NCBI RefSeq assembly: GCF_009834535.1
Contig: NC_045705.1
Span: forward strand, 71,734,001 to 71,798,000
DNA from: Camelus ferus
Lineage: Eukaryota
Direction: 5' to 3'
DNA length: 64,000 nucleotides
Part shown: in pieces, positions 33,999-57,808 of the stretch
Position numbering within the stretch: the stretch's first letter is position 1
Layout of the letters: each line of letters begins with the position of its first letter
Translations under genes and position numbers: made by a program
The notes under the pieces: model-generated
Told to the model about the DNA's origin: nothing
Seen by the model: only the letters and a program-made list of their open reading frames with translations
Database searches by the model: none

Positions 33999-36900
33999 CT
34001 ACGCACGGTAGGTGTCTGCCTTCACCACCTGGCAGTACATGGTCATGGCGAAGGTCAGCCCCAGGATCTGTGGGGACAGGTGGCAGCTGGGCAGGGCTGC
34101 TCCAGGGATGACAGCCCAGAGAGGTCCTGCCCCAGTAGGCACCCTGACCCCACCCCACTGCCTGGATGGCCTGTAACCCTAGGGCTCAGTCCAGACCCTT
34201 TCCCCTCAGGTTTGGCCACCCACCCTGGCCTCCACGGGTGGTGTCAGGACCCACGGGTGCCAGGCCTGGCCCCAGCAGCTGCCCTCTGACCGTTAATCCA
34301 ACTGCAATCAGCACCTTTGGTGCTGTCCGCCCGCTCTGGCTGCAACCCCCGTCTGCATCCCGGAGATGCGTTGCCCTGATGCTGCCGCATTCGGGACTTG
34401 CCATGGGGAAGAAGGCGGGGGCTGGGGTGGGTCCGGCGGTTCCGGTGGCAGCCCCACCCCCTACCTGCACCAGAGCTGTGCACAGTCCGAAGACGCCCAC
34501 GGCCAGCAGGTTCTCCTGAAGCCACATCTTCACCGTCTCGTAACAGGGCTGGAGGAAGAGCAGGCGTCACCGGGGGCTGCGAGGCCGGCGCTCCACCCTC
34601 AAGTCCCCGGGGCCAGAGCCGGGGGAAGGGCACAGCCTCACCGCTTTCCACCAGGTGCCGGGCGCGTGCAGCCCGCAGCTCTCGCTGAACTCCAGACAGC
34701 AGGAGTCGGGCACGCGCGTGGCGTTGTAGACCTCGAACCAGTCGGTGTAGTTGGAGACCCCGCAGCAGCGGAACTGCGGAGGAAGTGCGGGCTGGGACTG
34801 TGCCCTGGCCACGCCCTGGCCCCGCCCACGCCCGGCGCTGCCACGCCCCGACTCACGTCTGTCTGGATGATGCTCCAGGCGTTGGTGAGGCCCACGTTGC
34901 CCGGGGTTCCGTACAGGTGCAGGCCCCTCTTCAGGTCCCGCTGCGCGTACCTGTCGATCTGCAGGACAGCAGGGCCACCCTGCAGCCAGCTCCACCTACC
35001 TCGTCCAGACCCCACCTCTGCCCAGGCCCCCACCCCGTGCCTTCTGTCCCCCTTCCTGGAGTCACCCCCTCCCAGAAGCCCTCAGCAGGCTCAGGCCTTT
35101 GCCCCTTGGTCTCCCTGGGCCACACATGGTGCTGAGCCCGGGGTTCGAGTCAGACATCAGCACGACGTCCGTCAGTTATGTTCAGAGGGAGACAGTACAG
35201 AAACCCTCAGCTGCGTCTGCCCACACCCGTCAGGACCCACACATCTTGCTGTCGGCCAAGAGGGCCGAGGTCCTCATTCCTAAGACCATCCTCCAGGAAA
35301 GGAACCAGGCTCCTTGGAGAAATGGCCAAGTCCAGGGCTGGGGCAGGGACTCCCCAGAGAGGAGGTGCACTGAAGGAGGTGCATCTCCTCACAGGAGCAA
35401 GTGAGAGCTCCTAGCCACCAAAGCTAAGACAGACGAGCAAAAAATAACAGTCCTGGAGTATATAACTCAGAATAATGTAAATGAGTCCTCACTGGTGTAA
35501 ATAATGAAATAAATCCATGGGGGATAGGAGATTTTCCCCATCCAACTAATACACAGCTGAAGTCAGCAGGAGCAGGGGGCCCAGCCTGGGGGCCACCTGG
35601 GAGCTCACACTGCTTTGCCCTCCAGGGCCCCAGCGTTTCCCTCCAGGCCCGGCCTCCAGTGGTTGTGGTTAAAATCAGATGCACGGCCGGGTCCCATTGT
35701 TGGTCCTCGCCGTGCTAGGGCCCCCGCCCCCTCGTCGCCTGTGCACCATGGCCCTCATGGTGATGAGGATGGAGCCCCCCCACCCGAAGTGGGGGAGCCG
35801 CACCTTGTCAGTGTAGGCGAAGAAGAGGATGGCGACGGTGGCCTCCAGCAGGAACACCAGCAGCAGCAGCACGAAGAACTGCGGGCGAGGACCCGGCGGC
35901 CTCAGCAACCCAGCCCCCAGCTGCCCCCAGAGGGTGGGGCGCGAGCCTCAGCCCGAGCCCCCAAGCCAGGTCTGCAGGCCCCACTCGTGCTGCCCCACCT
36001 CCCTCGGAGCCCTCCCGTCTCTGTGCCAGGGGCTGTTGGGTCTTGCCCGACCTCTGAGCACAGCCTCACGTCTTCGAGCACACACGTGTGCTCCAGACCC
36101 ATGTCCTTGTGCTCGGCGGGCAGGTGCAGCGATGCCCAGGGGGGCCCCTGCAGGGAGTGGGTCTGACTGCAGTACCCCCAACCCCCAGGTCCCATCCCTC
36201 AGGACAGCCAGGGGTGGCCACTGCCCACTCAGGCAGGAACAAGTTAGAGAAGCCCCCACCTGTGACCGCACAGGTGGCCCACTGGGTGGTGGTACCTCAA
36301 GTCACAGCCTTGACCTCAGCCCAGGTGCCCTGGCCGGGCTGAGCAGTGGAGCACTAGCCTCTGACCTCTGACCTCCAAGTCACCCCGTGGGAAAGGTCAG
36401 GGTTGGGGGCCTCAGCTCCACCCCTACCCACCGCCCTGAAGGGAACATCTGGGGCATATACTGGACACGTTGGGTAGCTGCACAGACAGGGGACGCACCC
36501 TCTGGGAGGCCCCTCCCCAGCAAGGGCTCCTCAGACAGAGGCCCCAGATGAAGCAGGTGATTTCAGGCTTGAGTCAGCCGCCGGTGGCCGCTGCCAGGCA
36601 TACTAATAGGCGTAGCCTGGCCCAGGGGTCCTTCTCCTTCTCCTGTGATTTATGTTCCACAGGATGGAAACATCCTGCCTGTAAATCCACCTCTGAAGCC
36701 GAGGCGGGGGCTGGGAGCTCTGAACAGAGGGTCCTGGGGAGCCAAGAGGGCAGGGGCAGGAGCCGGGAGGGTTCATGGGAGAGGTGGTGTCAGAGAGCAT
36801 GGGCCCGGTACCGGCTGAAGGGGCTCTGCCTGGCATGCGTGTGGGTGTGCGGGCACCCGTGTGTCTGTGTCCCGTGAAGGGGGGCCCCGCCCGGCCCGGC

Positions 36901-42900: not shown

Positions 42901-44367
42901 ATGGCTGCCAGCTCTGGTCACACTGTCACCTGCAGCCTTCTCCTGTCACACTGCCAAGGGCATGCTGACCCTGCCAGCCGCTCAGTGCTAACCACACTGG
43001 TGCCCCTACATTTGGTCAACGTCCCCCACCAAGAGAAGACAGTCCCCTCTTCTCATGCCTGGGCAGAGCTCCAGCTGCACACCGCCTCTGCTGCTGGCTC
43101 TTGGCCTCCCGTGTACCCCTCCACTCTGGCCTGGGGCCTGCCCCTCCCAGGAGCCCCCTGCAGAGAAGAAAACCTGCGGGTGACCCCTTCTGGAGACGGG
43201 CATCAGGGCAGGAACCTCCCAGGCTGGCCACCCCTCTCAGGGACACCCCCCCTTAACAAACTGGGGAGAGGAAAGCCAGCACCCCAGGATAGAAGAGAGG
43301 TGCAGAAAGGCAGACGGGCTTTCTGAGCATTTGGCCTTAACTGGACCTCATGCAAATGAGCTTACAAATGACAGCCTTCTTCTGGGGCCCAGAGCCCAGG
43401 CAGGAGCTAAAGCCACACCCCCTTACTCCCAGTTGTGGAAGGAGGGTCCGATCAGGAATTAACAACTGAGCAGGGAGTGTGACCTTGGCATCATGTCTCC
43501 ATCAACCTTCTCCCAGCGAGACCAGTGGAGCCAGGTGTGACACCTGCCCCAGCCCCAGTCCAGCACCCTCCCTGCCCTTACGGGACTGGGTGGACCCTCT
43601 GTTCTCAATCTTGCAGGGAGGGGACAACCCTGCAGCACCAACACCTCTGACCCTGAACACAGGCACCTCATCTGAGCAAACCCAACCCAACTCTGCAAAA
43701 GTTATGGATGCCCCCCCCCCCATGTTGGATGAGCAGCAGAGGCCAGACCCCTCTCCTGCTGGCCCACCATCCTGCTCAGGCTCGGGCCCAACCAGAGCAA
43801 TTACCCACACACCCTCCTCTCCCGCCCCACCGCGCTTCAGGAGTCGCGGAACCAACTCCCCTCCTCAGCCCCTCCCTAAGTGTGGTCCCTGGAGCCCGGT
43901 AGGCCAGTCTGCTGAGGAGGGGAGGGAAGAAGAGACAAGCGCTGCAGCCACGAAGAGGGAGGGAAGGGGACGGAGGGAAGGCACCCGCGGCCCCGCGCAC
44001 TGACAGGGACTTAAACCCGGCAGAGGCCAGGCACGGGGCCTGAGGCGATCCTGCGGCAGGTGCGGGACGCGCCTGGTCTCAGGAAGAGATGGAGCAGGGA
44101 GAGGATGCGGGGCGGCCGCCCAGAGTGCAGAGGCCGGGGCGGACTCCAGAGGTACCGGAACCCCTCCCCAGGGGCCGATCCAGCCCTGGCCTGCAGAGGG
44201 AGCGACGACCCCCAGGCACGCCTCCCAGTCCACGTCCCGGGTGTCCCCCACGTACCCCTGCCGAAGCGGCGACCCCGGATCCCCGACATCCCGCGGCCAC
44301 TCACCCAGAAGAGCAGGTTGAAGGCGAACATGAGGTACTTGACGCCCTGGAGGCAGCCGCGCGCCAT
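33999..44367 (-). CDS. TSPAN4: Tetraspanin-4, spliced CDS, 238 aa
   Basis: complement(join(44305..44367,36924..37115,35804..35878,34857..34958,34642..34773,34465..34548,33999..34067)) = 717 nt, all GT-AG. MARGCLQGVKYLMFAFNLLFW..., CCG motif (FRCCGVSNYTDW), PDSCC, four TM segments, ends ...VVKADTYRA*. Confidence 0.97.
42038..42172 (+). mobile_element. L1M-type 3' end fragment in TSPAN4 intron
   Basis: aaatgtcctaaaatt...ggtgatggttgcacaactctgtgaat...ttgaactgcacatttcaaatgggttaattgtgtgatatgtgaat...tcaataacgctgtt...aaaaaa is the characteristic L1M 3' terminus. Confidence 0.85.
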
Positions 44368-45000
44368 GCTGCAGCGCTTCAATTCTAGGAGGAAGATGAA
44401 GGAGAGGTCCAGGTAGAAGACCACGTACTTGTTACCCTTGGGCGACGTGTAGCGCGCCTGGGCCGCCTTGGGGCCGGGATTGGCGTGCAGGCCGAAGAAG
44501 GCGCCGCCGCGCGCGAAGCCCGGCTCCTTGCCTGGCGGCGACGGGCTGCGCCGGTACGTGGACTCGTCTGTGCTTGAGCGGCGCATCGCGCGGGGCCGCC
44601 GGGGCCGCCCCAGGCTCCGCGCCCCGGGCCGCGGTGGCACCGGGCGCGCCGCCCCTCTCGGACCCGCGACGGTCCCCGGACACCTGCCAGCCCGCGGTAG
44701 CCCGGGCCGGGCCCGCCCCGCCCCGCCCCGTGCCCGCCCGCCGGCCAATCCGCGCCGGCCCCGCCTCCGCGAAGACCCCCCCCCTCCCCCGCCACTCCTC
44801 GCCGCGCCGCCTCGCAAATCCGACCGCGCCGCCCCGCGCGGGCCAATCACAGACCCGGGACGGCGCCCCCGCCCCCGGCCCTCCGCCCGCGCCGGCGCCC
44901 CTTGGTCTTCCACTTCCCCTGCCCGCCCAGTCCGGGAAGCGATGGAGGGGGCTGGGGGCTGAGGGCAGGGGGCCCAGGCAGCGCTCAGCCCCGGGCACGA
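44000..45000. promoter_or_regulatory. Intragenic CpG island over the TSPAN4 first coding exon; candidate alternative promoter
   Basis: CpG-dense, with tandem GC boxes (ccccgccccgccccg at about 44716-44730) and CCAAT boxes at 44745-44749 and 44843-44847. Confidence 0.75.
44368..44586 (-). CDS. TSPAN4: Putative 73-aa in-frame N-terminal extension of TSPAN4 (alternative first exon / long isoform)
   Basis: ATG at 44586 is in frame with the canonical ATG at 44367 with no stop between them. 66 of 73 codons end in G/C while positions 1-2 are often A/T. No transcript evidence is available here. Confidence 0.6.

Positions 45001-51699: not shown

Positions 51700-53636
<1,937 letters not shown>

Positions 53637-55676: not shown

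Positions 55677-57808
<2,132 letters not shown>

Follow-up and report, generated by a model that had tools for sequence, protein, structure and literature searches.

This study concerns the first coding exon of the tetraspanin gene TSPAN4, which lies on the reverse strand of a 64,000-nucleotide (nt) stretch of the Camelus ferus genome (contig NC_045705.1, positions 71,734,001 to 71,798,000), hereafter the window. Exon 1 of this gene is very probably used in two ways, yielding a protein of either 311 or 238 residues. Transcripts that start in the CpG island directly upstream would have exon 1 as their first exon, and the first AUG, at 44586, would then give the 311-residue product with 73 extra residues. 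These comprise a conserved motif rich in Ser, a linker that varies and, adjoining the first transmembrane segment (TM1), a hydrophobic block that hardly varies at all. Transcripts that start at upstream exons would instead be spliced into an AG at 44385 or 44377 and, as splicing into this embedded AG removes the upstream AUG, they would be left with the 238-residue form. Translation of the long form in the camel is something that we infer from the sequence. The two starts belong to the following parts of the exon:

44368 to 44586, reverse strand: 73-codon N-terminal extension of TSPAN4, recognised from its open reading frame (ORF), its shark-to-mammal orthologues, the ratio of non-synonymous to synonymous substitution rates (dN/dS) and its identity to Camelus bactrianus isoforms X3 and X6
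44305 to 44367, reverse strand: short-form (canonical) start, with its ATG at 44367-44365, and first 21 codons, MARGCLQGVKYLMFAFNLLFW

The long form starts at the ATG at 44586-44584 (reverse strand; context gcgcgATGc, with G at -3), from which the extension peptide, MRRSSTDESTYRRSPSPPGKEPGFARGGAFFGLHANPGPKAAQARYTSPKGNKYVVFYLDLSFIFLLELKRCS, runs in the same frame as the canonical MARGCL start. Coding exon 1 ends at 44305 and is followed by a donor GT at 44304-44303 (reverse strand). A first-pass annotation of this DNA had proposed that the upstream ATG opens 73 codons in frame with the one at 44367, with 66 of the 73 ending in G or C, and the ORF and our codon counts confirm this. The exceptions are TCA, ACA, CCA, AAT, GGT, CTA and GAA; all of the Phe, Tyr, Lys and Asp codons have C or G as the third base, and GC content at codon positions 1, 2 and 3 is 56%, 53% and 90%. 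This three-base periodicity is a real signal and not a product of chance. The CpG island around the extension has a GC content of 74-87%, the frame is open as far as 45063, and a stop-free frame also occurs in 22% of shuffled sequences; the open frame alone is therefore weak evidence of coding.

Relatives of the extension are found throughout the jawed vertebrates. A protein search with residues 1-94 as the query, against a database of 5.8 billion proteins, returned 279 matches. Among the best 120 of these 279 are predicted 'tetraspanin-4 isoform X' proteins from mammals, birds, reptiles and amphibians as well as from ray-finned fish, sharks and rays, and query coverage is 100% in nearly all. 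When the long TSPAN4 forms are aligned, the extension falls into three parts, namely the motif MRRSSTDES.Y.RSPS, a variable linker and the almost invariant block KYVVFYLDLSFIFLLELKRC. Furthermore, Met1 of the long form is invariant in 30 of 30 sequences of TSPAN4 and its paralogue TSPAN9. The first of the three parts lies at the very start of the long form:

44527 to 44586, reverse strand: N-terminal motif M-R-R-S-S-T-D-E-S-x-Y-x-R-S-P-S, in which RSPS is invariant in both paralogues

At the DNA level, seven sequences were compared: the window, two other mammals, a rodent-like complementary DNA (cDNA; L002), green turtle, barn swallow and zebrafish. The Met is the exact point at which similarity among the seven begins; the peptides read in frame ahead of it are mutually unrelated, and in-frame stops lie 12-33 codons upstream in the rodent, turtle and swallow. 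The extensions, whether genomic or cDNA, are all open, at 73, 73, 94, 95, 90, 90 and 82 codons, so every change in length has preserved the frame. Variable sites at codon positions 1, 2 and 3 number 25, 14 and 59 across the seven sequences and 7, 3 and 23 among the four mammals. Nei-Gojobori counts made on the extension only gave dN/dS values of 0.011-0.154 in comparisons within mammals and within sauropsids. Examples are the window against sequence L001 (0.047; 12 synonymous and 2 non-synonymous differences), the window against the rodent cDNA (0.078; 19 and 6) and turtle against swallow (0.011; 19 and 1). Judged by these patterns, the extension does encode protein and has been under purifying selection. 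This had been the central proposal of the first-pass annotation, and it is supported by orthologues from shark to mammal, by dN/dS and by the codon-position pattern. The signs that would have told against it (frameshifts, stops, a lost ATG, no synonymous bias) were not encountered: the frames are open, the Met is kept and dN/dS does not exceed 0.154.

One might still suppose that the conservation reflects non-coding functions (promoter, 5' untranslated region, pyrimidine tract and acceptor) and that the open frame is a by-product of the GC-rich island. The openness of the frame far upstream, the stop-free shuffles and the fact that the last 35 nt are a true splice signal would all suit this explanation. 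However, the third-position bias in substitutions (25/14/59), the dN/dS of 0.01-0.15, the in-frame indels and the onset of similarity exactly at the ATG speak against it. So do the distance of 150-200 nt between the N-terminal motif and the acceptor and the protein-level conservation across jawed vertebrates and in the paralogue, and we find the explanation scarcely credible.

The remainder of the camel gene is also in place.

37115-36924, 35878-35804, 34958-34857, 34773-34642, 34548-34465 and 34067-33999, reverse strand: downstream coding exons 2 to 7, with AG/GT boundaries and the stop in the last

On sequence grounds, the locus is the TSPAN4 orthologue, a member of the tetraspanin family (PF00335), a domain that matches the orthologous protein P0023 at E = 8e-57. 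The seven exons of the window assemble into an intact 311-residue ORF that is 96.8% identical, without gaps, to goat isoform X1, in agreement with the 311-residue product that had been predicted.

The long TSPAN4 isoform is already annotated in databases. The curated human RefSeq protein NP_001426622.1 (tetraspanin-4 isoform d, 330 residues) contains both MRRSSTDE and KYVVFYLDLSF, places the canonical Met at residue 93 and shares 98.5% identity with the gibbon long form. This protein is the human orthologue of the camel long isoform; the camel and artiodactyl forms have 311 residues because 21 codons, including FRRYSS, have been deleted in frame. Similarly, Camelus bactrianus isoforms X3 (XP_045373232.1, 307 residues) and X6 (263 residues) carry an extension and first exon identical to those of the window, but differ from the window product in skipping exon 3 (TM3) and adding 21 residues from intron 6. 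The earlier description of the isoform as 'hidden' is not borne out, as the human and Camelus bactrianus proteins contain the extension; the raw sequence had been read correctly, and the product, being annotated already, is not a new discovery. Literature searches with peptide strings and isoform names found no paper on the long form of TSPAN4 or TSPAN9. Within the literature that could be searched, the depth of its conservation, the module shared with TSPAN9, the absence of the canonical Met in some fishes and the codons that double as a splice signal appear to be unpublished.

The second use of the exon depends on splice signals that lie within the last codons of the extension (a slash marks a junction in what follows):

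44385 to 44386, reverse strand: first 3' splice-site AG (a44386 g44385; CTAG/AA, exon from 44384), its A being the last letter of the Leu67 codon CTA and its G the first of the Glu68 codon
44377 to 44378, reverse strand: second 3' splice-site AG (AAG/CGC, exon from 44376), 8 nt downstream of the first, used at the junction of contig L012
44387 to 44421, reverse strand: polypyrimidine tract, which also encodes the hydrophobic block VFYLDLSFIFLL; 83% C/T in the window

In 7/7 DNA sequences Leu67 has CTA, a rare codon, with G after it, and 7 of the 10 CTA codons in the data set fall at this site; of the third positions that can be compared, 59 of 69 vary. This supports the earlier suggestion that the CTA and GAA codons are held by the acceptor. 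At least 10 gene models with unrelated N-termini from upstream exons converge at /ELKRCS (Saimiri, Lemur, Trachypithecus, mouse, manakin, turkey, duck, pigeon and stork), and a cobra gene model joins at /KLKRCS. The /ELKRCS junction has the phase expected of CTAG/AA at 44385/44384. The model junctions and the invariant CTA-G thus bear out the ctag acceptor of the first-pass annotation, with its exon from 44384.

The other AG is attested by L012, a short-form RNA contig that is fully spliced and comes from a mammal with about 90% identity to the window. The contig reads ...CTCCGG/CGCTGCAGC-ATG, and its junction AAG/CGC corresponds to 44377/44376; Lys70 is an invariant AAG in six tetrapod sequences. 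Taken together, the /ELKRCS models and the L012 junction therefore define two tandem acceptors, both within the last codons of the extension. The pyrimidine fraction of the 35 nt before the first acceptor is 0.77-0.83 in six species, which agrees with the proposal that the pyrimidine tract doubles as code for the hydrophobic block. The earlier reading of the exon was right in making the acceptor at 44385 functional, but it had missed the second AG, 8 nt downstream, and the artiodactyl loss of 21 codons.

Two protein models, P0150 and P0152 (king cobra and a related model), use a donor inside the extension, after ...GQFGAA, that is spliced to the embedded acceptor. This splice skips the hydrophobic block and keeps the N-terminal motif, and it is possible that it makes a third isoform. 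In human endothelial cells, a splicing quantitative trait locus (rs4963153) affecting a TSPAN4 junction cluster (11:843050-847201) is colocalised with low-density lipoprotein cholesterol (PMC12324277).

Spliced long-form mRNAs exist in other species. The rodent-like contig L002 (run SRR28256956) consists of a 230-nt leader, the extension and exon 1, precisely joined to exon 2. In zebrafish, four assemblies from separate runs (L008-L011) encode the complete 321-residue long ORF, each with one contiguous first exon and seven correct splices. The goat 311-residue product is an exact record in both the Logan assemblies and NCBI. In the window, the DNA ahead of the long-form start has the following character:

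44587 to 44900, reverse strand: CpG-island leader and putative internal promoter, with inverted CCAAT boxes and GC boxes

Two other mammals share the inverted CCAAT boxes, at 44847-44843 and 44749-44745, and the accompanying GC boxes. The 514 nt of the window upstream of 44586 (to 45100) contain no ATG in any frame, which would fit a short dedicated leader, and none lies between the two starts. An internal promoter in the CpG island is plausible, given these elements and the transcript contigs that continue without a break upstream of the long-form ATG.

The same long protein could, however, be made without an internal promoter, if transcripts from far upstream kept the intron because they were not spliced at the embedded acceptor. 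Genomic DNA matches the leaders of L002 (230 nt) and of zebrafish L008 (835 nt) without interruption, neither leader has a defined 5' end, and the zebrafish leaders contain several upstream ATGs, all of which would be in keeping with retention. Conservation of the island and of its CCAAT and GC boxes among mammals, the stretch without an ATG in the window and the apparent status of the long form as the only product in gar and rays argue the other way. We consider retention rather unlikely as the source of the long form, and an internal start remains the origin that we presume for it.

The extension is not confined to TSPAN4. Weaker matches in the protein search read MEKSSS.ES.IHRSPSLDS ... GSKYVVFYLDLSFVFLLEFKKCN, followed by MARGCLCCLKY, and are named tetraspanin-9 by NCBI. 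In rays, TSPAN9 isoform X1 (329 residues) has the module and isoform X2 (238 residues) is without it, and TSPAN9 long forms of about 326-341 residues are annotated in chimaera, sharks, teleosts, frogs, lizards, birds and mammals. A comparison with the same position in TSPAN9 had been recommended with the original proposal, and it does reveal a homologous module before MARGCL. An extension-only profile, run against 1.84 billion representative proteins at a threshold of E <= 0.001, found 60 representatives. Among 39 newly returned matches, nearly all of those inspected, and every strong one, were TSPAN4 or TSPAN9 of jawed vertebrates; a Pfam scan of the extension gave no family match. As the module is common to TSPAN4 and TSPAN9, it predates their duplication. 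Within the long forms, the best-kept part is the end of the extension:

44371 to 44436, reverse strand: GNKYVVFYLDLSFIFLLELKRC (residues 51-72), the most conserved segment of the whole protein across 63 TSPAN4 and TSPAN9 long forms

In these 63 sequences the mean consensus-residue fraction is 0.89 for the block, against 0.87 for TM1 and 0.66-0.69 for TM3, the second extracellular domain (EC2) and TM4. Furthermore, the canonical TSPAN4 Met is replaced by Leu or Val in gar (P0080), four rays (P0074, P0076, P0077 and P0079) and a chimaera-like sequence (P0072), so the upstream ATG is the only possible start there. A wider proposal would be that TSPAN4 and TSPAN9 made the long form ancestrally, that some lineages make no other product, and that the N-terminal module of this form, a phospho-regulated disordered tail with an invariant hydrophobic block beside the membrane, controls trafficking or the assembly of tetraspanin macrodomains. 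We offer this tentatively, as an idea that is more likely wrong than right. If it were true, a regulatory layer would have escaped studies that used forms of 238-239 residues, of TSPAN4 in migrasomes and of TSPAN9 in platelets and endosomes, and the sequence of the block would be under the double constraint of protein function and of the splice signal that turns the block off.

What might the extra residues do? The patterns YVVF, YLDL, RRSS and RSPS are present and conserved. The tail would be cytosolic, disordered and probably phosphorylated at its basophilic and proline-directed Ser motifs (RRSS and RSPS), as far as the structure models and motifs suggest. In a second AlphaFold model, built on 63 sequences (mean pLDDT, the predicted local distance difference test, 68.5, with 75-89 in the body), a short helix at residues 61-71 is split from the TM1 helix at Cys72, with low confidence. 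This predicted helix next to TM1 would argue against adaptor access to the YxxPhi motifs. The hydrophobic block has 16 residues, is flanked by basic residues on either side and includes Asp60 and Glu68, which do not vary; its mean Eisenberg hydrophobicity is 0.69 and its hydrophobic moment 0.10. Our best reading is that it would lie next to the membrane as a hydrophobic element that has a conserved Cys and acts at the inner leaflet or as a binding surface.

An alternative is that the block is an additional transmembrane segment, giving a five-pass protein with an extracellular N-terminus, and a run of 16 mostly hydrophobic residues with the Eisenberg value and low moment just given would allow this. 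The top six Kyte-Doolittle windows (19 residues; 1.69-1.96) all lie in TM1 and none covers the block, which is a weak test; also against it are the invariant Asp60 and Glu68, the basic flanks on both sides, N-terminal motifs that resemble cytosolic kinase sites, and a second model with only the short helix at 61-71. An extra membrane pass therefore strikes us as very unlikely, and we retain the view of the block as a juxtamembrane element.

The extension has also changed within mammals, the camel lineage included:

44500 to 44512, reverse strand: approximate site of the in-frame artiodactyl deletion (21 codons relative to L003), which removes GGPFRRYSSLYGRAG...

The loss of 21 codons is common to camel, deer, goat, reindeer, cattle relatives and whales, and other mammals differ from the artiodactyl extension by 19-24 codons. 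On either side of the deletion are direct GCCCCTTC repeats, which L003 still has. What is left of the camel extension is still under selection, to judge from its dN/dS of 0.047.

Several observations weigh against the two-way use of exon 1. The FRRYSS motif, kept from sharks to primates, has been lost in artiodactyls, this camel included, and the extension is relaxed in sequence in a few mammals (armadillo, the Iriomote cat model and the source of the transcript-derived protein P0193). Both structure models give the extension low confidence: the first has a mean pLDDT of 51, and in the second the extension falls below 60 and residues 1-60 lie at about 30. Expression of the long form in the camel would follow from NCBI models and from other species, and L002 and the zebrafish contigs could derive from transcripts that retain the upstream intron.

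In a further alternative, the extension was coding ancestrally but in mammals, or in the camel, is a rarely used or untranslated relic, so that the 238-residue form is the only relevant protein. To our knowledge, every functional study has used the 238-residue form of TSPAN4, and the artiodactyl loss of a conserved motif with its 21 codons, as well as the relaxed sequence of some mammals, would be expected of a relic. Strong purifying selection in mammals (0.047 for the window against L001, 0.078 against the rodent cDNA) would not, nor would a deletion that preserves the frame or a goat 311-residue product recorded from RNA assemblies. We judge a relic improbable, and the use of exon 1 for both a long and a short protein remains the explanation that we favour.

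P0193 itself (Logan, 257 residues, mammalian and transcript-derived) begins MVLSLDLSLLLLLELRSCG-MARGCL and maps to window positions 44424-44290. Its sequence suggests that the N-terminus is a diverged conserved block with a new Met, the extension having decayed in that lineage. An origin of this N-terminus from a second copy of the block was considered and rejected, as it maps to the same site.

Other features of the window concern the camel gene models and the neighbourhood of the locus. In the Camelus RefSeq models X1, X3 and X6, the TM3 exon (35804-35878) is skipped and/or exon 6 is longer by 63 nt (34402-34548, reverse strand). As the canonical AG/GT sites are intact in the window, the regular products of 238 and 311 residues may be absent from the Camelus model sets, at least in the part of those sets that was available. 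The camel protein ends in ...ADTYRA (CGT at 34005-34007, reverse strand) and those of the other mammals compared in ...YCA, a change of a C-terminal Cys to Arg.

Upstream of TSPAN4, the window holds a POLR2L-type exon and, probably, a tetraspanin paralogue. The former is a last coding exon at 53529-53636 (forward strand), matched by the Pfam family RNA_pol_N (PF01194) at E = 1.3e-13. Weak tetraspanin matches at 56053-56229 and 57725-57763 (both reverse strand) show 34-36% identity to TSPAN4 EC2 and a TM1-like match, and they probably represent the neighbouring paralogue, presumably CD151 from the human gene order. Part of the L012 leader also falls in this region:

53524 to 53634, reverse strand: segment matching part of the L012 5' leader, antisense to the last POLR2L coding exon; its status as a TSPAN4 exon is uncertain

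For this far-upstream leader no donor end could be demonstrated within the window, and it would represent an antisense start far upstream or else a join made in assembly. As its origin is uncertain, L012 was used for its coding-exon junction only.

TSPAN4 is the standard marker and a driver of migrasomes, and TSPAN9 has been studied in platelets and in virus entry, each as a protein of about 238 residues. Both genes encode a long form, with 70-115 extra residues that include the most conserved stretch of the protein. That stretch has been kept since the jawed-vertebrate ancestor, and in gar and some rays the long form alone has a start codon. The locus further provides a clear case in which codons under strong constraint also house a splice acceptor and its pyrimidine tract.

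Finally, the locus may be set beside systems that it resembles. One is TSPAN9, with long isoforms ('tetraspanin-9 isoform X1') that have the module at the same position, share RSPS and carry G.KYVVFYLDLSF.FLLE..C directly before MARGCL, and, as in TSPAN4, one gene has both a long and a short form annotated. However, TSPAN9 begins with MEKSSS and not MRRSST, its linker is different and longer, and it has no FRRYSS; the embedded acceptor was read in TSPAN4 DNA alone, whereas the TSPAN9 module was compared as protein. TSPAN10, with its long cytoplasmic N-terminus, resembles the long form of TSPAN4 in joining an extended tail to a tetraspanin core, but no sequence relationship was detected, and by profile the module is found in TSPAN4 and TSPAN9 only. 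Tetraspanin-10 was among the nearest clusters in an Atlas feature search, at scores of 0.42-0.49 that are far below a meaningful level. In its transcript architecture, TSPAN4 exon 1 would resemble the hybrid first/internal exons, that is, alternative first exons with an exon-internal 3' splice site, which serve as a first exon or, through the inner acceptor, as an internal one, the choice setting which AUG is used. Unlike generic exons of this kind, TSPAN4 has its acceptor and pyrimidine tract inside highly constrained coding sequence that dates to the jawed-vertebrate ancestor.

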